From sequence record MG655269.1: 64,000 nt of DNA; one strand, given 5' to 3'. The notes beneath the pieces were generated by a model, which worked only from the letters and a program-made list of their open reading frames with translations, searched no databases and was not told the origin of the DNA. The position numbers and the translations under genes are program-made. Of the stretch, positions 1,425-9,222 are shown piece after piece (position 1 is the stretch's first letter; each line of letters starts with the position of its first letter).

Positions 1425-2072
1425 ATGGATAATTTGCTTGAAAGGGGACGGTTTCTTCTTGAGAACACTGCAGCCGCCATGAACCCTTATCCTTACACGA
1501 TCATTTTCGTCACCACCCCAATGGATTGGGATGCCGTGGTCACTGCCATGCATGCTAACGATCCTGCAGCAAACATCATTAAACATAAAGGACAGTTCAC
1601 GACCCGGCGCGATTACCAATATGTCATTTATCGAGATGAACATTGGTATATCGCTGGTGCGAATATGAGAAGCCTGCCTTACAACCATTACCATACCGGT
1701 GCGATGCTCGGCATTGCCATGGACCTGGGGCATGAAATCATTATCGATATCAGCAATCGCATCGGGAATGATGCGACTGCAGCTCCGGCGATAACGGCGA
1801 TCATGCACGATTGGTTTATGGTCAACTGGCGCGAAGCTGTATGCGTGACCCATGAGAACTACCTGGCATTTATTCCGGACGATGATTACTTGTACTTGAG
1901 TAACAACAAAAAAATACTCAGGCAAGTGATTCGCGCACAAGAACAACTGGGATCGCCCTTGGCATTGACGTCGGCGTTACAGCGTGAGTGTCAGCGCCTG
2001 ATGAACACCCAGGTGATGATCGAGCCCACTGGTTGGAACGCCACTACGTACTACAGCGGAGGTGAGGTATGA
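1425..2072 (+). CDS. Hypothetical protein, degenerate member of a tandem HExxH paralog family
   Basis: Shares IIFVT..DWDAVV, KHKGQF and C-terminal TGWNATTYY with the next two ORFs, but lacks an intact HExxH. Confidence 0.7.
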   Translation: MDNLLERGRFLLENTAAAMNPYPYTIIFVTTPMDWDAVVTAMHANDPAANIIKHKGQFTTRRDYQYVIYRDEHWYIAGANMRSLPYNHYHTGAMLGIAMDLGHEIIIDISNRIGNDATAAPAITAIMHDWFMVNWREAVCVTHENYLAFIPDDDYLYLSNNKKILRQVIRAQEQLGSPLALTSALQRECQRLMNTQVMIEPTGWNATTYYSGGEV

Positions 2073-2740
2073 CGTTTGCTGAAGCTGAACAGTATATTTA
2101 CAGTCTCAGTCAAGACGGCGGGGTCTATAAACAAGAGTTCATCTTTGTGTTTGATCCCGAGTCGTGGGATAAGGTGAACCTAGCGCTGGATATCCTGGAC
2201 AATAACCGTGGGATCTGGGTGAAGAACGTCGGAGAGTTCAAAACCGCTGGTATGACGACCTACGGACCGGTGTCGGGAAGGCTTAAAGGGTATGTTGTTA
2301 TTGCTGTCCATTTCATGGGCGAACGTAAACTGTTCAATCCAGGGTATCTGCAGCATGTGTTGAATACCGCGACCCATGAGTTGGTCCACGCTGCTCAGTT
2401 CGCTGTTCGGGCGCAGAGCTACCATGATCCATTGATTGCTGTAGAGCCATTGGCTTACCTGACCGGCTGGCTAATGGAGAAATGGATCTATGCGGTCTGG
2501 GAGAAGTTTAAAATCACGATTGCAACAACACCCACCGGCGAGATCTCATACAACGTGTTGTTTGACATGCTGTATCGGTTTAATGACCGCCGGCTGGCAG
2601 ATCGTCTGTGTGAGCTCACCATGACACAGATTCAGAGTGCTTTAGTTAGGGAGTCGATTAACAGTCTGAATAACGTGGCAGTGGTAAACGATATCGGTTG
2701 GTCCTCGACAACGTATCTGGATGGAGTTAACAAGAAATGA
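2069..2740 (+). CDS. Putative zinc metallopeptidase-like protein (HELVH...EP.AY)
   Basis: THELVHAAQ motif plus downstream EPLAYL; 4-nt overlap with neighbours (translational coupling). Confidence 0.65.
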   Translation: MTFAEAEQYIYSLSQDGGVYKQEFIFVFDPESWDKVNLALDILDNNRGIWVKNVGEFKTAGMTTYGPVSGRLKGYVVIAVHFMGERKLFNPGYLQHVLNTATHELVHAAQFAVRAQSYHDPLIAVEPLAYLTGWLMEKWIYAVWEKFKITIATTPTGEISYNVLFDMLYRFNDRRLADRLCELTMTQIQSALVRESINSLNNVAVVNDIGWSSTTYLDGVNKK

Positions 2741-3363
2741 AGATGCCGGTCAGTCAGTATGTAGATAAGTTTCTATTAAGGCTGTTCCCTTATCCGCGGC
2801 AGTTTATCTTTGTCACCAGTGTTGCGGATTTTGATGCGGTGGTTACCGAACTGGCACGTCGGCAGACTGCGGCTGGGATTAGCAATAAATGGCTGAGTCA
2901 CAGAGGGCATTTCAAAGGGAATGGGATTTGTGCTTCGGGGAATCAGATCTGTGTATTAGGTGCGCTTTATGATACCGGCACGCAGATCAGTCCGGCTAAC
3001 ATCGCCGGGACGATCGGTACCATGCAGCATGAAATCCAACACATGTTACTGCATACCTGTGCACAGATTGGTTATAACCCGATGCGCGAACACGAACCGT
3101 TTACGTATTTAACGAAGTGGGTGTTTGAGTTGTTCCTGGCGTTTATGCGTAATTACCACGGCGTGATGATCACCGATGTGCAGCGGCAAGATACTGGTAT
3201 GCTGAGTCGGTTGCAGAAGGGAGGGGCTTTTGAGTTACTGCACGCCCTGCCCGTTGAAAATGTTCGAGATTCATTAGCAAGAGAATCTCGTGCATTATTA
3301 AACAACGCGGTGGTCGTCAGTCCTATTGGTGCATCCCGTTCCACAACCTATTTCGAATTATAA
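2737..3363 (+). CDS. Putative zinc metallopeptidase-like protein (HEIQH...EP.TY), paralog of the preceding genes
   Basis: QHEIQHML plus EPFTYL; C-terminal IGASRSTTYF matches the paralogs. Confidence 0.65.
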   Translation: MKMPVSQYVDKFLLRLFPYPRQFIFVTSVADFDAVVTELARRQTAAGISNKWLSHRGHFKGNGICASGNQICVLGALYDTGTQISPANIAGTIGTMQHEIQHMLLHTCAQIGYNPMREHEPFTYLTKWVFELFLAFMRNYHGVMITDVQRQDTGMLSRLQKGGAFELLHALPVENVRDSLARESRALLNNAVVVSPIGASRSTTYFEL

Positions 3364-3369
3364 TTAACC

Positions 3370-3395
3370 CGACCAGGGAAACCTGGTCGTTATGC
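3370..3395 (+). terminator. Hairpin CGACCAGG-GAAA-CCTGGTCG followed by TTATGC
   Basis: Perfect 8-bp stem with GAAA tetraloop after the paralog triad. Confidence 0.75.
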
Positions 3396-3412
3396 TAATT
3401 AAGGAGGTAAGT

Positions 3413-4114
3413 ATGGGTATGTATACCGGCGTCTCATTTCGTTTGAAGGTCAGAAAAAATGCACCCTTGCCGGTGTTAGAGTTCATGGATAAGTTCTTCA
3501 TGGAAGGTGAAACACTGCAAGCAGTGAAAGACCTACAGAAAGAAACGGGTATCCAGTTCCAGTCCACAGCCATTGCATTACCGGGTGATCAGTTTCATTA
3601 CAGTGAAATTGCCGATATGGTCATGATGGTTCGCGGGCACTCTTCCAGTTTTGAAAGCTGGTACTGGCGTGTTAAAGAAGATAAGGGCGATTACTGGTTG
3701 TATGAAACCCGCGCCAATACCAAACGCCCTCACCATGACCTGGCCGCCAACCTTATCCAGGCATTATTACCATGTCTGGTTATCGAAGAAGGTGAGGTGG
3801 TGCTGCGCTCCATTTATGAAGACAGCGCCCAAGAACGCGTTCTGGCATTGGTAAATGGCAAGATTATTGAGGAACGTGGTTATGAGTACGAGGATGAATA
3901 CAATAGCCCGTGGAATGAAAAGGCGCCGATAGATTATGTCAAGGGTGATTTTGGTGCAATTGCACATATCCGCATCACCGAGGAAGAAGAGTTCACACCA
4001 CCTTGGACCTTACAGGAACTGCGGGCCGGTGAAGAAAAAGCACGGTTAGAGAAAGAAGCCGAGCACGAACGGATACGGGCAGAGGGCGGTGGTTTCGGTT
4101 TCGGTGGTTGGTAG
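3413..4114 (+). CDS. Conserved phage hypothetical protein
   Basis: Strong SD AAGGAGG before ATG 3413; MGMYT start typical of a widespread phage family (recall). Confidence 0.75.
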   Translation: MGMYTGVSFRLKVRKNAPLPVLEFMDKFFMEGETLQAVKDLQKETGIQFQSTAIALPGDQFHYSEIADMVMMVRGHSSSFESWYWRVKEDKGDYWLYETRANTKRPHHDLAANLIQALLPCLVIEEGEVVLRSIYEDSAQERVLALVNGKIIEERGYEYEDEYNSPWNEKAPIDYVKGDFGAIAHIRITEEEEFTPPWTLQELRAGEEKARLEKEAEHERIRAEGGGFGFGGW

Positions 4115-4142
4115 TTTTAATTAATTTAACCTGAGGTGCATT

Positions 4143-5171
4143 ATGAAACGTTTGGACGAACCAGAATTCTTGAAAGGTGAACTTAAGAATATCACCTATG
4201 TGGCCGGCACTAAAAAGATCGGCTGGCTTGATAAACTCAATCGTGCACTAACTGAAAATAAAGGGAAGGTAACGCCGTATAAGTTTTTGCGGGCCCGCGA
4301 TCTACACGATGCGTTTAAAGACGCGAAATTCAGTACCAAAGAACAGAGTGAATTTCATAAACTGGTCTCTGATCCGGTGCAGGGAGACTTTTGGGTATCA
4401 AGTATGTTGATGCTGTGGTTATGGTCAATCAACCGCGTGGTGTACCGCCTTCCCGTTGAATTGTTTGCAGCCGCTAACCAGAATTATGATGTGGGTAACG
4501 TTCCTATCGAAACCCTTACCCGTATGCCGCAGTGGACTACGTGTATCGCAATGGACTGGGAAGGCATTGCAATAGATAAAGACGGGCATTGTCAGCGCGG
4601 TCTCTTTTACAGTCTACAAATGCTCAACGGGAAAGAGTATCTGCAGATAGAGTTGTATGTCACGTTCCATCGCAGTGAATCAGGCACTGTTAAGTTTGGG
4701 TCGTATACCCTGCTTATTGATACTTCCAAGACAAATGTCAGAGAAGGTATGGAGCAGGCACTGATTGATATCCCCAAATATCAAAACATGGGGATGTCTT
4801 CAAGTGTTCGTATCGGGCTTGATGAATCTGAAGATATGCTTAGCGATATTATCACTGCGATCTCGCTGGTTAACGGTGAACACCGAAAATCAGAACTGGG
4901 CAAGACGGATATCAAATGGCCAGGCTACCAAATTCAAGGTACGTCAGGCTACAAGATCCGCCCGCGTTTGAAAGCAGTAGAGTTCATGGTGGGTGAAGAA
5001 TACGTTCCACAGTTACGTGCGGCTGGCATCTCTAACGAGCGTTCACAACGTAAGAGTCATATTCGTTGTGGTCACTGGCACACGTACTGGTTAGGTCCTC
5101 GTAGCGGTCCACGTACGCAAGAGCGGTACTGGCTAATGCCAATTGTTGTTTCTGGTAAAGCACCAGAATAA
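4143..5171 (+). CDS. acrVA2: AcrVA2/FinQ-family protein
   Basis: C-terminal SHIRCGHWHTYWLG...W.MPIVVSG matches the AcrVA2 HIRRGHWHGYWQG...WQPAVFVNSG motif; W...VYRL and P...L.RMPQW motifs present; 342 aa; SD GAGG. Confidence 0.8.
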   Translation: MKRLDEPEFLKGELKNITYVAGTKKIGWLDKLNRALTENKGKVTPYKFLRARDLHDAFKDAKFSTKEQSEFHKLVSDPVQGDFWVSSMLMLWLWSINRVVYRLPVELFAAANQNYDVGNVPIETLTRMPQWTTCIAMDWEGIAIDKDGHCQRGLFYSLQMLNGKEYLQIELYVTFHRSESGTVKFGSYTLLIDTSKTNVREGMEQALIDIPKYQNMGMSSSVRIGLDESEDMLSDIITAISLVNGEHRKSELGKTDIKWPGYQIQGTSGYKIRPRLKAVEFMVGEEYVPQLRAAGISNERSQRKSHIRCGHWHTYWLGPRSGPRTQERYWLMPIVVSGKAPE

Positions 5172-5194
5172 TCCAATTTAAATAAGGGTAGTTT

Positions 5195-5896
5195 ATGAAC
5201 GGTATGAAGATGATGATTGGTTCCCTGCCACTGAGCAGCATGATGGGTGGTAGTCGTTCAGACGCGGGGACTTTCAATCCTGCAGCGCACGCTGCCCCTT
5301 TCCGTGCAGTTGGCGAGTACATCGCGGATGCAGCGTTTGAAGATCGTGGGGTATTGGTTTCTGCAGACGGGATCGTTGCTACTGTGCGAGCCAAAAAGGT
5401 GACCTTCCAGGAAGCCGCAGATGCCCGCGGTGCAGCCACTGGACTGTATGCCATTATGTTCCCAGTCACTAACGGGGCGAAAGACGATACTGTCGTGATC
5501 ACCACTACCAGTCAGGCTGTGTTGTTTAACTTACTGGCAGTTGAAGATCTCCCTGATGAACTGTTTGTGCAGTTTGGCCTGGCAACGAATGCCGCGACGG
5601 TGAAAGCCATGACCAATGACAACAACGACCATATCCGGGTACTGGCCAATGCCGGCGGTATCGCCCCAAGCAATACTTCTCCGTCCCATTTGATTGTGGA
5701 CAAGCAGCGCAATCTGATCATTGGTCATATTGTAAAAGAAGGTGATGATCAAGCAGACTTCAGTATCTTCGCCGCCTCACGTAAATCCAAATCATCACAG
5801 GACTACATTATCAACGTGAGTACCGATGATAGTGATATCATCAAGCATATCGTCCAAGCTACAGTGGAAGAGATTGCACTGGGAGACGCGGTCTAG
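5195..5896 (+). CDS. Hypothetical protein
   Basis: 233-aa ORF in operon orientation with phage-like codon use. Confidence 0.7.
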   Translation: MNGMKMMIGSLPLSSMMGGSRSDAGTFNPAAHAAPFRAVGEYIADAAFEDRGVLVSADGIVATVRAKKVTFQEAADARGAATGLYAIMFPVTNGAKDDTVVITTTSQAVLFNLLAVEDLPDELFVQFGLATNAATVKAMTNDNNDHIRVLANAGGIAPSNTSPSHLIVDKQRNLIIGHIVKEGDDQADFSIFAASRKSKSSQDYIINVSTDDSDIIKHIVQATVEEIALGDAV

Positions 5897-5953
5897 TCTG
5901 TAATTGCAGACAAAACCGGCGGATGATATAGCACCAGAAATTAAGAGGTAACT

Positions 5954-6766
5954 ATGGTGGTAAGAGGTCAAGGCGGTATTGAGAAGGGACACAAATACGG
6001 TCGTCTTACTGCCGTACGTTTTATAGGTAAAAATAAAAATTACATGGCTAACTGGGAGTGGTTATGTGATTGCGGTAAGACTATTCAGGTCTATGCCGGG
6101 GATGTTAAATGCGGGCACACTACATCTTGCGGGTGTTATGTTAGAGAAATGATGGCTGATAAACAAACCACTCATGGCTTAAGCAAGACTCGGGAATACA
6201 AGATATGGGCAGGGATGATAAAACGCTGCACGAATGCTAATGTCGAAAACTATCACCTGTACGGCGGTAGGGGTATTAAGGTTTGTGAGAAGTGGGCTTC
6301 TTCATTTGAAGAGTTTCATAAGGACATGGGTTTTGCACCGAGCAAACAACACAGCATCGAGCGTATCGATGGTGATGGTAATTACGAACCTGGTAATTGT
6401 AAGTGGGCAACGAGTGCAGAACAAAGTGCTAACCGTAATAATAACCGCTGGGTTGAATATAAAGGCGAGCAGAGATTACTCTGTCATGTTGTCGCTGAAA
6501 TAGATACCCATGCAACAACTGTTTATTATTGGACGGATAAGGGGCTCACGGCTGATGAAATAGAAACCGTTGTAAACAGCACCCTTAAGAAAGGATTCAG
6601 GTTCTATGCACCTAGTGTAACTCATGTTGTCCTAAAGGCAACTGATTCATTAGCAGCAGTAATGGGAAAAGACTTTCATGTTGTTGTGAACAGCAGTCAT
6701 GATCAACACGGTAACGTAGTGTCTAAAGTCGTTCACGGGCATGTCAGGAAAATTAACCAGGAGTAG
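5954..6766 (+). CDS. HNH-family homing endonuclease (free-standing)
   Basis: YGRLT...CDCG...SCGC, HG..KTREY.IW..M..RC...YGGRGI.VC..W, SIERIDGDGNYEPGNCKWAT; relatively AT-rich. Confidence 0.88.
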   Translation: MVVRGQGGIEKGHKYGRLTAVRFIGKNKNYMANWEWLCDCGKTIQVYAGDVKCGHTTSCGCYVREMMADKQTTHGLSKTREYKIWAGMIKRCTNANVENYHLYGGRGIKVCEKWASSFEEFHKDMGFAPSKQHSIERIDGDGNYEPGNCKWATSAEQSANRNNNRWVEYKGEQRLLCHVVAEIDTHATTVYYWTDKGLTADEIETVVNSTLKKGFRFYAPSVTHVVLKATDSLAAVMGKDFHVVVNSSHDQHGNVVSKVVHGHVRKINQE

Positions 6767-6770
6767 AGTA

Positions 6771-7418
6771 ATGAGTGTAATGACCGGTGGATTTGGTGCT
6801 ATTAACGCGTTAATGTCGAACGGCAGACCGACGCAAGGAGCACTTGAGTATTTTAACAATCAGTATCAGGGCATGCTGCAAGCAGCGCAGCAGGTGGGTA
6901 GTGTAGCGATGCAGCAGATCTATCAGATCGCAACACACACCTATGAAAACCTGATGCAGACCCGTCCGTGGGAACTGGCAGAAGCAGCGTTGCGTCAAAC
7001 AGTGCACATGTTTGACCCGAACACGGTTCGTCAGCTTCTCAACCTGGCTGATATGCAAACCGCCAAACCGATCATGCAGCGGTGGGTGATGGCGCAACCG
7101 GATATCCGTCAGATGTATCATCAGCAGCGTATCGATGGTTACAGCGAAACGTATGAAGATGCCCAACCAGGGATGGTAGGTGCAGACCATTATGATTATC
7201 GTCGTGCAGCAAACGGCATGTTGCAGTTTGCACACACTGAAGAGGTGCCGATGGCGTCTTGGCAGGCGACGACCTATTATGAGCGTCTGGTAGAAGGTGA
7301 TAACGAACTGTCGTTCCATGAGAAGCGTGACATCCATGTAACCTGGGATGCGTGTCTGAATCTGATGAACACACAGGCGTATGATCCGACCTCCATCTTC
7401 AACATGAAGCTGGCGTAA
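6771..7418 (+). CDS. Conserved Chimalliviridae core protein (possibly phiKZ gp59/Imp3-like by position)
   Basis: MQRWVMAQP.IR.MY..QRIDGYSETY...HYDYRR motif recalled from phiKZ-like phages; SD GGAG before ATG 6771. Confidence 0.6.
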   Translation: MSVMTGGFGAINALMSNGRPTQGALEYFNNQYQGMLQAAQQVGSVAMQQIYQIATHTYENLMQTRPWELAEAALRQTVHMFDPNTVRQLLNLADMQTAKPIMQRWVMAQPDIRQMYHQQRIDGYSETYEDAQPGMVGADHYDYRRAANGMLQFAHTEEVPMASWQATTYYERLVEGDNELSFHEKRDIHVTWDACLNLMNTQAYDPTSIFNMKLA

Positions 7419-7426
7419 GTTAATCG

Positions 7427-7454
7427 GAGGAGGGGCAGCCCTCCTCTTATGCCG
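7427..7454 (+). terminator. Hairpin GAGGAGGG-GCAG-CCCTCCTC followed by TTATGCCG
   Basis: Perfect 8-bp stem after the 7418 stop; full consensus tail. Confidence 0.75.
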
Positions 7455-7487
7455 TTTGGGGGTAGCATGGCAAAAAAGGAACTCACG

Positions 7488-7691
7488 ATGAAGCGACTTC
7501 AGATAGACATCTCTGAACAGGGCTTTAGCAAACTCAATGCACTCAAGGTGAAAATGGAAACCACTGCCATGGGTAGCGTTGTCAGCCGCGCCTTATCGAT
7601 TACCGATCGTTTGTTCACCGCCAAGGAGAAAGGCAGTAAGATCCTGATCGTGGATAAAGATGGTAATGTCACCGAAATCGAATTACTGTAG
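7488..7691 (+). CDS. Ribbon-helix-helix (CopG-like) small DNA-binding protein
   Basis: KRLQIDIS beta-strand followed by two helices (LNALK, VVSRAL); AAGGA SD before ATG 7488 (alternative start 7467). Confidence 0.6.
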   Translation: MKRLQIDISEQGFSKLNALKVKMETTAMGSVVSRALSITDRLFTAKEKGSKILIVDKDGNVTEIELL

Positions 7692-7699
7692 AGGTTAAC

Positions 7700-7927
7700 A
7701 TGGCTTGGTCCAAACGCCGTGCAAAGAAACGCATCATTCACTTACGTGGTTTTCATTATCGTGTTCAATCACGTAGTATCGCAATCTGGGAACAGTATCG
7801 CGAATATCATCAAAATCGACCATTTGGATCTGGCGTTGGTTTATTGATGTTACTTGACCCTGAAACTGGTTGTCCAATAGGAGCTCATCGTGGCCTTAAG
7901 CAAAACAAAAATAAAGCGTCGTACTAA
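7700..7927 (+). CDS. Small basic hypothetical protein
   Basis: SD GAGG; K/R-rich N-terminus MAWSKRRAKKR. Confidence 0.6.
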   Translation: MAWSKRRAKKRIIHLRGFHYRVQSRSIAIWEQYREYHQNRPFGSGVGLLMLLDPETGCPIGAHRGLKQNKNKASY

Positions 7928-8174
7928 TGCGCTGTATAACTACAAAACGCTGGTTGAACGCATTAGCTATAAATGCATGATAGCCCACATCGATGCTCAG
8001 GGTATCAAGCTTGAATTGAACCGCACGGGTTCGTCAATTAAAAGTGAAGACATTCCTGCTGCAAAAGAAGCCCGTCTTGCATTGAAACGCGAAATCGTCC
8101 GTCTGCGGAATATCCAGGGGCGTCGTCGTATCGTGAATGCCGGTAAGATCAAAGCGGCAATCAGCCAGTATTAA
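7890..8174 (+). CDS. Small basic hypothetical protein
   Basis: GTG start with GGAG SD; overlaps the previous ORF by 38 nt; similar N-terminus MALSKTKIKRR. Confidence 0.6.
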   Translation: MALSKTKIKRRTNALYNYKTLVERISYKCMIAHIDAQGIKLELNRTGSSIKSEDIPAAKEARLALKREIVRLRNIQGRRRIVNAGKIKAAISQY

Positions 8175-8177
8175 TAG

Positions 8178-8207
8178 AAGGGACTTCGGTCCCTTTATTT
8201 TTTTTTG
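8178..8207 (+). terminator. Intrinsic terminator AAGGGAC-TTCG-GTCCCTT with T-tract
   Basis: UUCG tetraloop and long T run. Confidence 0.9.
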
Positions 8208-8234
8208 TCTTGAATAATGAAATTTTTACGCTGT

Positions 8235-8267
8235 AGAAAATCTTAGACCTATATAACGGCACTGATA
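8235..8267 (+). promoter_or_regulatory. Putative early (virion RNAP) promoter AGAAAATCTTAGACCTATAT-N8-TGATA
   Basis: Near-identical copies at 8841 and 31160; TATAT core resembles the phiKZ early consensus TATATTAC. Confidence 0.75.
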
Positions 8268-8297
8268 GAGTAATCTAAATTAACTTACGAGGTTATC

Positions 8298-8828
8298 ATG
8301 AAAAACACTACTTTTCTAATTGAGACCCTGAAACGTACCTTGGAAGAGCTGGACCAGGCAACGTTATCAACTGAAGAAAAAATTGAATTAACCACCATGG
8401 TTGAGAAAGAACATTTTGCTAAGCTGTTCGGTGTCCGCGCAGAAGAAACCACTCAGTTAAGTGAGCGCGATTTCTCTAAACTGACCGGTTATCAGTACAA
8501 CAGTGTTTACGCGGGGTTAGATTTGGTTGGTAATTTTGACTGGGTGATCACGGCGGATGGCGCAGTCGTAACAAGAGAAATGCCTCATCACGGCAGTAAC
8601 CATTGGTTGCCACCGCACAGGCAATTTATATTCAGACTGATCGATGAAGGTCGTGAAATATTTAATGAAGGCACTAGACTGCTTGTTATCAGAATTGAGA
8701 ACACCATCACCAAAGAGGTCTTTTCAATTAACTTTGAAGTTGCTGATATTCAAATCGGCAGTGCGGTTGTTAAAATGGTTGAGCGTTATCTGTTCGATTA
8801 TTACAGGGTCAGCGTCAAGAAACTGTAA
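8298..8828 (+). CDS. Hypothetical protein (putative early gene)
   Basis: SD GAGG; directly downstream of the promoter motif. Confidence 0.75.
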   Translation: MKNTTFLIETLKRTLEELDQATLSTEEKIELTTMVEKEHFAKLFGVRAEETTQLSERDFSKLTGYQYNSVYAGLDLVGNFDWVITADGAVVTREMPHHGSNHWLPPHRQFIFRLIDEGREIFNEGTRLLVIRIENTITKEVFSINFEVADIQIGSAVVKMVERYLFDYYRVSVKKL

Positions 8829-8840
8829 AATATGAGTTGC

Positions 8841-8873
8841 AGAAAATCTCAGACCTATATGACTGGGGTGATA
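8841..8873 (+). promoter_or_regulatory. Putative early promoter AGAAAATCTCAGACCTATAT-N8-TGATA
   Basis: 19 of 20 positions identical to the 8235 copy, with the same N8-TGATA spacing. Confidence 0.75.
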
Positions 8874-8931
8874 AAGAGTAGTGAATACTCTTAACCCCTA
8901 ACCCAATTAACCTTAAGTATGGAGTAGTATC

Positions 8932-9222
8932 ATGACTGTAACTTTCTCTCAGCAAATGCAGGTTGTCGAATCTATCGCTGTGATGCAGGAAAAAGCAATG
9001 GAACTGCAAGTTGCTACCAAAGCGTGTTACGACGAAGTCACCCGACTGGCCAACCGACTGGCTGACATCAACGATCCACTCGGCTTTCAGAAAGCCTATG
9101 AAGAATATCGTGCCAAGCTGGCAGAAGCGGATGTATTAGCCGATGCTACTCGCCTGGCTTACAACATGTCAGACGCTGCACTGAAAACCATCCTGGGTGA
9201 AGCTAACCCAACCTTTCATTAA
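8932..9222 (+). CDS. Small coiled-coil hypothetical protein (putative early gene)
   Basis: SD GGAG; helical A/E/K/Q-rich sequence. Confidence 0.7.
   Translation: MTVTFSQQMQVVESIAVMQEKAMELQVATKACYDEVTRLANRLADINDPLGFQKAYEEYRAKLAEADVLADATRLAYNMSDAALKTILGEANPTFH

Follow-up and report, generated by a model that had tools for sequence, protein, structure and literature searches.

What does a jumbo phage that appears to house its DNA in a nucleus do with a protein resembling AcrVA2, an anti-CRISPR that acts on Cas12a? The question is raised by MADMEL_230, a gene of Erwinia phage vB_EamM_MadMel that lies in the 64,000-nt stretch of DNA analysed here (bases 186001-250000 of MG655269.1, hereafter the window, to which coordinates refer unless another locus is named). 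Over 3000-9000, the window is 100% identical to positions 189000-195000 of that record. Its ATG-initiated open reading frame (ORF) occupies exactly 4143..5171 on the + strand, encodes 342 aa plus a stop, and is entered in GenBank as a 'hypothetical protein' (AUG86658.1). A first-pass annotation of this DNA had claimed a full-length AcrVA2/FinQ-family protein in a nucleus-forming jumbo phage, had doubted an anti-Cas12a role, and had proposed an undescribed phage post-transcriptional silencing system. We find that MADMEL_230 is intact and truly belongs to the AcrVA2/FinQ family (Pfam PF26125), its membership being firmly supported. By analogy with AcrVA2, we further propose, with a probability of about 0.5, that it is a functional accessory member of this family and may act as a conflict gene, a cytoplasmic silencer of a target other than Cas12a.

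The kinship with AcrVA2 emerges once relatives are brought into the search. A single-sequence search of the PDB returned only AcrVA2 (7ci1, E=0.013), through the C-terminal motif only, and a six-sequence profile gave a marginal match (E=0.009). An exhaustive hidden Markov model (HMM) search was seeded with the six closest relatives and recovered 324 proteins at E<=1e-3 among 1.84 billion representatives, most of them 310-350 aa long. A 97-sequence profile matched AcrVA2 7ci1 with E=8.1e-49 over chain residues 8-319 of 323. The profile of the 10-member jumbo-phage clade alone also matched 7ci1, with E=5.3e-9 in two collinear stretches. This clade aligned to 86 distant members with an HHalign probability of 100% (E=1.3e-41, residues 78-342), and the distant members alone matched AcrVA2 with E=3.7e-50. 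Profile drift as the cause of the AcrVA2 match is ruled out by the clade's own match and by its alignment to the distant members.

The predicted structure leads to the same protein. The AlphaFold2 model of MADMEL_230 (predicted local distance difference test score 85.9, predicted template modelling score 0.87) was compared with the PDB by Foldseek, and only AcrVA2 chains were matched (7ci2_A, 7ci1_A/B; E=4e-11 to 2e-10, probability 1.00), with template modelling (TM) scores of 0.51-0.61 over ~350 aligned columns; the next PDB match had E=0.024. The likeness to AcrVA2 is thus far beyond chance. A precomputed Pfam match for the exact protein is PF26125, 'AcrVA2-like', and phrog_6160 matches it end to end (E=9e-89). 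When MADMEL_230 and its 97 relatives were scanned with a copy of Pfam-A that did not hold PF26125, nothing relevant was found, and PADLOC gave no match for MADMEL_230 or its two neighbours. An NCBIfam hit to RNase HII was rejected as noise (12 bits against a cutoff of 251).

A second line of kinship runs to FinQ. A homolog from phage SA002, 36% identical to MADMEL_230, matched finQ-annotated genes in 604 plasmid records, of which 545 are conjugative. We took as FinQ reference a 363-aa ORF from the finQ locus of the IncI-gamma/K1 Escherichia coli plasmid NZ_MW598246.1. Pairwise BLASTP aligned MADMEL_230 residues 1-337 to FinQ residues 3-347 (E=1e-12, 22% identity), and HHalign aligned the clade profile to FinQ with a probability of 98.9% (E=2.6e-17, 317 columns). 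These alignments show that MADMEL_230 is collinear with FinQ, and this extends to the N-terminal ~77 residues, which cannot be aligned to AcrVA2-like members. The profile searches, HHalign, Foldseek, and the FinQ alignment together bear out the claim of full-length family membership. A separate observation concerns the plasmid locus itself: RefSeq places finQ at 440-1219 (259 aa), while the ORF reaches 128 (128-1219, 363 aa), and alignment of this added N-terminal part with the phage protein starts at residue 3. The start codon annotated in this record probably lies too far downstream.

We then consider which residues the family has kept. The motifs picked out by the first-pass annotation, among them H-x-R-x-G-H-W-H, all lie in the translation, at residues 91-103, 120-131, 280-285, 304-318, and 329-338, and they coincide with the most conserved columns of the 97-sequence alignment. 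P129, H306, R308, and G318 are kept in 97/97 sequences; H311 in 96/97; W330 in 95/97; W94, P121, and G284 in 94/97; H313 and W316 in 93/97; and P333 in 92/97. Correspondence to AcrVA2 was taken from tool alignments only, and the AcrVA2 letters quoted in the first-pass annotation were not used. PDB chain numbering appears to equal the numbering of Marino et al. (bioRxiv 10.1101/2022.11.29.518452) plus one, since all five named residues then fit the right letters. In the PDB alignment, H306, R308, and H311 correspond to AcrVA2 H286, R288, and H291. Substitution of each of these three by alanine abolishes down-regulation of Cas12a mRNA by AcrVA2 while binding is kept (Marino et al., bioRxiv 10.1101/2022.11.29.518452); the motif of MADMEL_230 therefore matches residues that AcrVA2 requires for activity. 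W79A and D89A reduce AcrVA2 function, the loss with D89 being moderate (Marino et al.), and the near-invariant W94 of the N-terminal domain is the counterpart of W79.

The three parts of the protein (Table 1) differ in how they have evolved. Residues 1-77 cannot be aligned to the bulk of the family, the HHalign coverage beginning at residue 78, and they align weakly to FinQ. The middle domain, which varies most within the clade, notably at residues 141-160 and 181-240, has a ratio of nonsynonymous to synonymous divergence (dN/dS) of 0.15. It is the counterpart of the AcrVA2 region that holds the peptide-binding pocket, in a stretch where the alignment is of low confidence. Comparison of the gene between MadMel and the Agricanvirus AH06 gave dN/dS of 0.106 overall, 0.025 over aligned codons 241-340, and 0.14-0.15 over the rest; these values are approximate, with synonymous divergence (dS) saturated. 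Within the clade, identity has its minima at residues 61-80 and 181-240 and its maximum at 241-342, and the C-terminal module alone is found by tblastn in many other jumbo phages. MADMEL_230 is under purifying selection and is a functional gene. The pattern is the one expected if a conserved effector module were joined to a diverging recognition part.

The cellular setting bears on what this gene might do. MADMEL_224, which lies 4.4 kb upstream of MADMEL_230 and just outside the window, is a chimallin by its matches to phrog_4795 'nuclear shell protein' (E=8e-261) and PF25677 (E=2.1e-46). Its sequence and that of the annotated RAY chimallin are 100% identical, and the RAY nucleus has been shown by fluorescence microscopy and cryo-tomography. 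We therefore consider it a strong inference that MadMel is a nucleus-forming jumbo phage (Chimalliviridae), which upholds the premise of the first-pass annotation. RAY does not degrade host DNA, and Asesino, an Erwinia phage whose nucleus formation has been observed experimentally, also leaves host DNA intact. Therefore, genes of the host, of a plasmid or prophage, or of a rival phage should still be expressible during infection. A selective silencer of newly made proteins would fit a conflict role.

On the analogy with AcrVA2, the following sequence of events may be proposed. The MADMEL_230 mRNA would be exported from the phage nucleus and the protein made in the cytoplasm. Through its variable N-terminal and middle parts it would bind a specific protein, probably while this is still a nascent chain on the ribosome; loss of the corresponding mRNA would be triggered by the C-terminal H-x-R...H module, which is conserved. 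The target is most likely not Cas12a and more likely a protein whose synthesis begins during infection, from DNA spared by RAY-type phages; candidate sources are the host chromosome, a resident plasmid or prophage, and a co-infecting rival. The role would be one of anti-defence or of competition between elements, not of core replication.

A more specific form of this proposal would extend it to the whole clade. The jumbo-phage members may block synthesis of a specific protein, encoded by the host or by a rival element, that in the cytoplasm is a danger to nucleus-forming phages. Such a protein may, for example, belong to an induced defence of RNA-targeting or abortive-infection type, or may be made early by a competing phage or plasmid. 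We regard this extension, which is again drawn by analogy, as a tentative idea on the doubtful side. If it is true, no counter-measure of this sort would have been described in Chimalliviridae before, and the family would gain its first new class of target. The counter-measure might serve the relatives of RAY and Asesino most, whose host DNA stays transcriptionally available.

Presence and absence of the gene among close relatives fit an accessory role. Among 17 related phage records, the gene occurs only in MadMel and Special G (two records) among the matches listed, and the Special G protein is 99.7% identical, the two genes differing by 8 nt and 1 aa. RAY and Deimos-Minion, which are 97-98% identical to MadMel in nucleotide sequence, have an empty site between the homologs of MADMEL_229 and MADMEL_231. 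MADMEL_230 is thus an accessory gene. A recent insertion in MadMel was considered and rejected. AH06, a more distant phage whose host is E. billingiae, and a 225-kb metagenomic contig carry the gene in the corresponding slot, where it again lies downstream of the genes for chimallin and an RNA polymerase subunit, and the divergence resembles that of the flanks: the MadMel and AH06 proteins are 64% identical for MADMEL_230 and 49-86% identical for the flanking genes. Ancestral presence followed by loss in the RAY-like lineage appears more parsimonious, with the caveat that dS of the gene between MadMel and AH06 is 2.5, above the 1.0-1.3 of the flanks, though saturated.

Other genes in this neighbourhood also come and go. 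An HNH endonuclease gene (5954-6766, + strand; phrog_374, E=1e-66) is present in MadMel and Deimos-Minion and not in RAY and Special G, and its presence is independent of that of the AcrVA2-like gene. At the slot of MADMEL_229 (702 nt, window 3413-4114), Deimos-Minion has a different, shorter gene (597 nt, Deimos-Minion locus 1893-2489), and the sequence common to the two phages amounts only to ~120 nt on the left side plus the 24-nt boundary between genes (4111-4134). This suggests a cassette replacement bounded by conserved AT-rich intergenic sequence. The few kilobases downstream of chimallin look like a hotspot of accessory-gene turnover. Nearby, three tandem paralogs, MADMEL_226, 227, and 228 (208-223 aa; 1425-3363, + strand; phrog_4857, E=1e-96 to 1e-110), form an array that is kept in AH06 and in the metagenomic relative, with orthologs 49-65% identical.

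MADMEL_230 itself is separated by 28 nt from the stop of the gene before it and, counted from its own TAA stop (5169-5171), by 23 nt from the start of the gene after it. At the empty site of RAY and Deimos-Minion, the position that matches its GAGGT (Table 1) reads GACGT in the junction alignment. The AT-rich boundary motif at 4115-4130 gave three loose matches and no repeated promoter-like element. On the + strand, the first 10 kb contain a single strong hairpin that resembles an intrinsic terminator, at 8177-8196, just after MADMEL_235 (8-bp stem followed by a T-run). One long transcription unit may extend to this site, beginning at the RNA polymerase subunit gene or further upstream. A GC-rich palindromic hairpin with a perfect 8-bp stem lies at 3370-3389, in the 49-nt gap between MADMEL_228 and MADMEL_229, with no T-run on the + strand. 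No tRNAs or Rfam families were found in the window.

Table 1. Features of MADMEL_230 and its surroundings in window coordinates.
Feature	Position	Strand	Basis
Complete coding sequence of MADMEL_230, AcrVA2/FinQ-family	4143..5171	+	ORF, GenBank annotation, family homology, precomputed PF26125
Shine-Dalgarno-like GAGGT, 5 nt 5' of ATG	4133..4137	+	Sequence, junction alignment
Segment differing from RAY-like siblings, 1043 nt versus ~28 nt intergenic	4135..5177	+	blastn to RAY and Deimos-Minion, junction alignment, annotations
All-helical N-terminal domain, residues 1-97, six predicted helices	4143..4433	+	AlphaFold secondary structure, HHalign, FinQ alignment
Middle alpha/beta domain, residues 98-255	4434..4907	+	AlphaFold; within-clade identity; pocket residues of Marino et al. 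mapped via PDB alignment
Conserved C-terminal module, residues 256-342, small beta-meander	4908..5168	+	AlphaFold, column conservation, dN/dS 0.025
H-I-R-C-G-H-W-H motif, residues 306-313	5058..5081	+	PDB alignment, Marino et al., column shares

Several points weigh against the proposal of a cytoplasmic silencer. The literature describes no mechanism for the destruction of mRNA by AcrVA2 itself, and for the jumbo-phage members both a target and mRNA decay are argued by analogy. A silencer of new synthesis cannot remove existing proteins and would be of limited value to a lytic phage unless its target were induced or short-lived. The siblings thrive without MADMEL_230, so that its benefit may be narrow. 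Scans for sigma-70 promoters and terminators stayed at background level, with no signal near the gene that would speak to the timing of its expression. Sequence identity to AcrVA2 is ~14-15%, and the column of AcrVA2 D89 holds P104 in MADMEL_230, with Glu106 two residues on. In the family this column has Asp in 56/97, Pro in 15/97, and Glu in 9/97 sequences. D89 is therefore not universal, and Pro104 is a minority state that is no bar to membership.

The main rival to this proposal is the classical description of FinQ, in which the protein would act on transcription, by premature Rho-independent termination or loss of particular transcripts, and would read no nascent peptide. FinQ is indeed reported in the literature to terminate tra transcription at several sites and to lower F tra mRNA, and the alignment of MADMEL_230 with FinQ runs over the whole length, N-terminus included, and is fuller than that with AcrVA2-like members, in which residues 1-77 stay unaligned. 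However, the 1989 data measure loss of mRNA, which is equally explained by translation-coupled mRNA destruction (Marino et al., bioRxiv 10.1101/2022.11.29.518452), and the conserved residues that are shared are those tied to mRNA down-regulation in AcrVA2. We consider a purely transcriptional action unlikely, and both descriptions may be of one mechanism. The same conserved residues bear on whether the fold has been turned to different biochemistry, such as that of a nuclease or of a binding protein that does not act on translating mRNA. No biochemical activity has been assigned to the family, AcrVA2 included, no known enzyme fold was matched, and outside the clade residues 1-77 have a counterpart only in FinQ. 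Yet the residues most conserved across the family are those needed for mRNA down-regulation by AcrVA2, which argues for a shared effector chemistry and leaves a change of biochemistry rather doubtful.

The position of the gene could instead suggest a regulator of the phage's own expression, for example one that shuts off early phage mRNA at a given time. MADMEL_230 belongs to a long block of co-directional genes and lies 4.4 kb downstream of those for chimallin and the RNA polymerase subunit, with the hairpin at 8177-8196 as the first strong terminator-like site after it on the + strand. A regulator of this kind is distinctly unlikely: siblings at 97-98% identity are viable without the gene, and in other lineages the homologs occur in unrelated contexts, which is not the pattern of a core regulator. 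Dispensability in the siblings would also suit a decaying passenger without function, and this we find scarcely credible for an intact ORF with a good ribosome-binding site, invariant key residues, strong constraint (dN/dS 0.106 overall, 0.025 in the C-terminal module), and a sequence just 8 nt and 1 aa from that of Special G. A true anti-CRISPR that shuts off Cas12a would share the family, fold, and catalytic-type motif of AcrVA2, but it is very improbable here. E. amylovora has type I CRISPR-Cas systems and is not known to have Cas12a. The protein shares only 14-15% identity with AcrVA2, and of the residues that contact the Cas12a 618-634 peptide in AcrVA2 (E98, D129, and D195, which are dispensable in vivo; Marino et al.), two can be mapped: E98 aligns to Gln113 and is thus changed, D129 aligns to Asp145 in a low-scoring stretch, and D195 is unmappable. 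AcrVA2 homologs are found on plasmids and in megaphages, mostly in hosts without Cas12a, and probably have other targets (Marino et al., bioRxiv 10.1101/2022.11.29.518452). Cas12a is thus an improbable target on two grounds, the shielding of DNA from DNA-targeting Cas enzymes by the phage nucleus and the general absence of Cas12a where homologs occur, in line with the doubt raised in the first-pass annotation.

The distribution of the family is broader than that of the phage nucleus. By tblastn, family members occur in 68 phage records at E<=0.01 and in 93 at E<=1; Erwinia phages account for 47-60 of these records, and the others include phages of Klebsiella, Serratia, Salmonella, Dickeya, Leptospira, Moraxella, and more. 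A library of viral structures gave 11 matches to MADMEL_230. Chimallin is detectable with the MadMel query in 20 Erwinia records, compared with the 47-60 Erwinia records that have a family match, and the family is thus not specific to nucleus-forming phages. No RAY-like genome is among the matches listed (60 of 93 records). Likewise, no Pseudomonas phage is named among the family matches listed from one tblastn query, though 68 Pseudomonas records carry chimallin. Set beside the presence of the family in Erwinia nucleus-forming phages that spare host DNA (RAY relatives, Asesino), this absence may reflect a correlation, but it gives only a hint.

Where tblastn detects only the C-terminal module, the genes are still of family size (Y3_246, 339 aa; Asesino gp235, 308 aa), and HHalign places the latter clearly in the family (99.5%, E=4e-23). 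In gp235 (locus coordinates 1805-2731), the equivalent of H313 is Gln, and the first three key motif residues are kept. No conserved partner gene was found in SA002, RisingSun, Y3, Asesino, and the metagenomic contig, whose contexts differ, and because no neighbour is conserved across lineages MADMEL_230 probably acts alone, as AcrVA2 and FinQ do. No second copy was found by tblastn of the phage records, each genome having the gene in one place. In RisingSun, gp126 (locus 3189-4705) is annotated 'putative mycothiosynthase', probably a mis-annotation, and it directly follows gp125, a GNAT-type 'acetyltransferase family protein'. The pairing is curious, as AcrVA5, another inhibitor of Cas12a, is an acetyltransferase.

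The identification of MADMEL_230 as a family member is not new and is already held in public databases, because GenBank names the Special G protein 'putative protein FinQ', PF26125 covers MADMEL_230, and both Al-Shayeb et al. 2019, who noted huge-phage proteins clustering with AcrVA2, and Marino et al. treat the family. The GenBank note of SA002 also cites a FinQ match. With these annotations and this literature preceding it, the proposal of an undescribed silencing system was overstated. What is new here is the rigorous confirmation for MADMEL_230, the residue mapping, the domain-wise pattern of selection, and a clean presence/absence polymorphism among near-identical, tractable nucleus-forming phages, together with recurrence of the family in Asesino.

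This polymorphism gives the locus its value. AcrVA2 is so far the only bacterial example of nascent-polypeptide recognition coupled to mRNA elimination, and for its ~1,800 homologs the targets established are Cas12a and, loosely, the F tra genes. The near-identical isolates infect the same host and form a natural contrast, the gene being present in MadMel and Special G and absent from RAY and Deimos-Minion. With the cell biology of RAY characterised and host DNA intact, a comparison of expression between them could reveal a second target of the family. We regard the locus as a sound but modest lead, not a discovery; a new class of target, if one came to light, would raise its interest considerably.

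Among known systems, MADMEL_230 resembles in build AcrVA2, the anti-CRISPR of a Moraxella bovoculi prophage (PDB 7ci1/7ci2). The two proteins are of similar size (322-323 aa for AcrVA2, 342 aa for MADMEL_230) and have in common a helical N-domain, an alpha/beta middle, and a C-terminal beta module, and the activity-critical H-x-R...H and Trp of AcrVA2 are kept. They differ at the equivalents of D89 (Pro) and E98 (Gln) and in residues 1-77, which are unalignable to AcrVA2-like members. MADMEL_230 is encoded by a lytic, nucleus-forming jumbo phage, whereas AcrVA2 comes from a temperate prophage, and, unlike AcrVA2, it has no adjacent AcrVA1-like partner. PF26125 and PHROG 6160, to which it belongs, are families defined by sequence, with no function assigned to their phage members. 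The members in other jumbo phages (Asesino gp235, RisingSun gp126, Y3_246, SA002 MGA_78, Dickeya JA13, and Klebsiella FBKp24) are stand-alone genes of the same family and size; their N-terminal and middle parts have strongly diverged, their genomic contexts are unrelated, and often only the C-terminal module is detectable by tblastn. FinQ, the fertility inhibitor of IncI-type conjugative plasmids, adjoins plasmid transfer genes and acts on F tra, whereas nothing points to a conjugation target for MADMEL_230. FinQ and MADMEL_230 nevertheless share the C-terminal motif and are both stand-alone genes, and FinQ is a gene of a mobile element that lowers the transcripts of a rival element.

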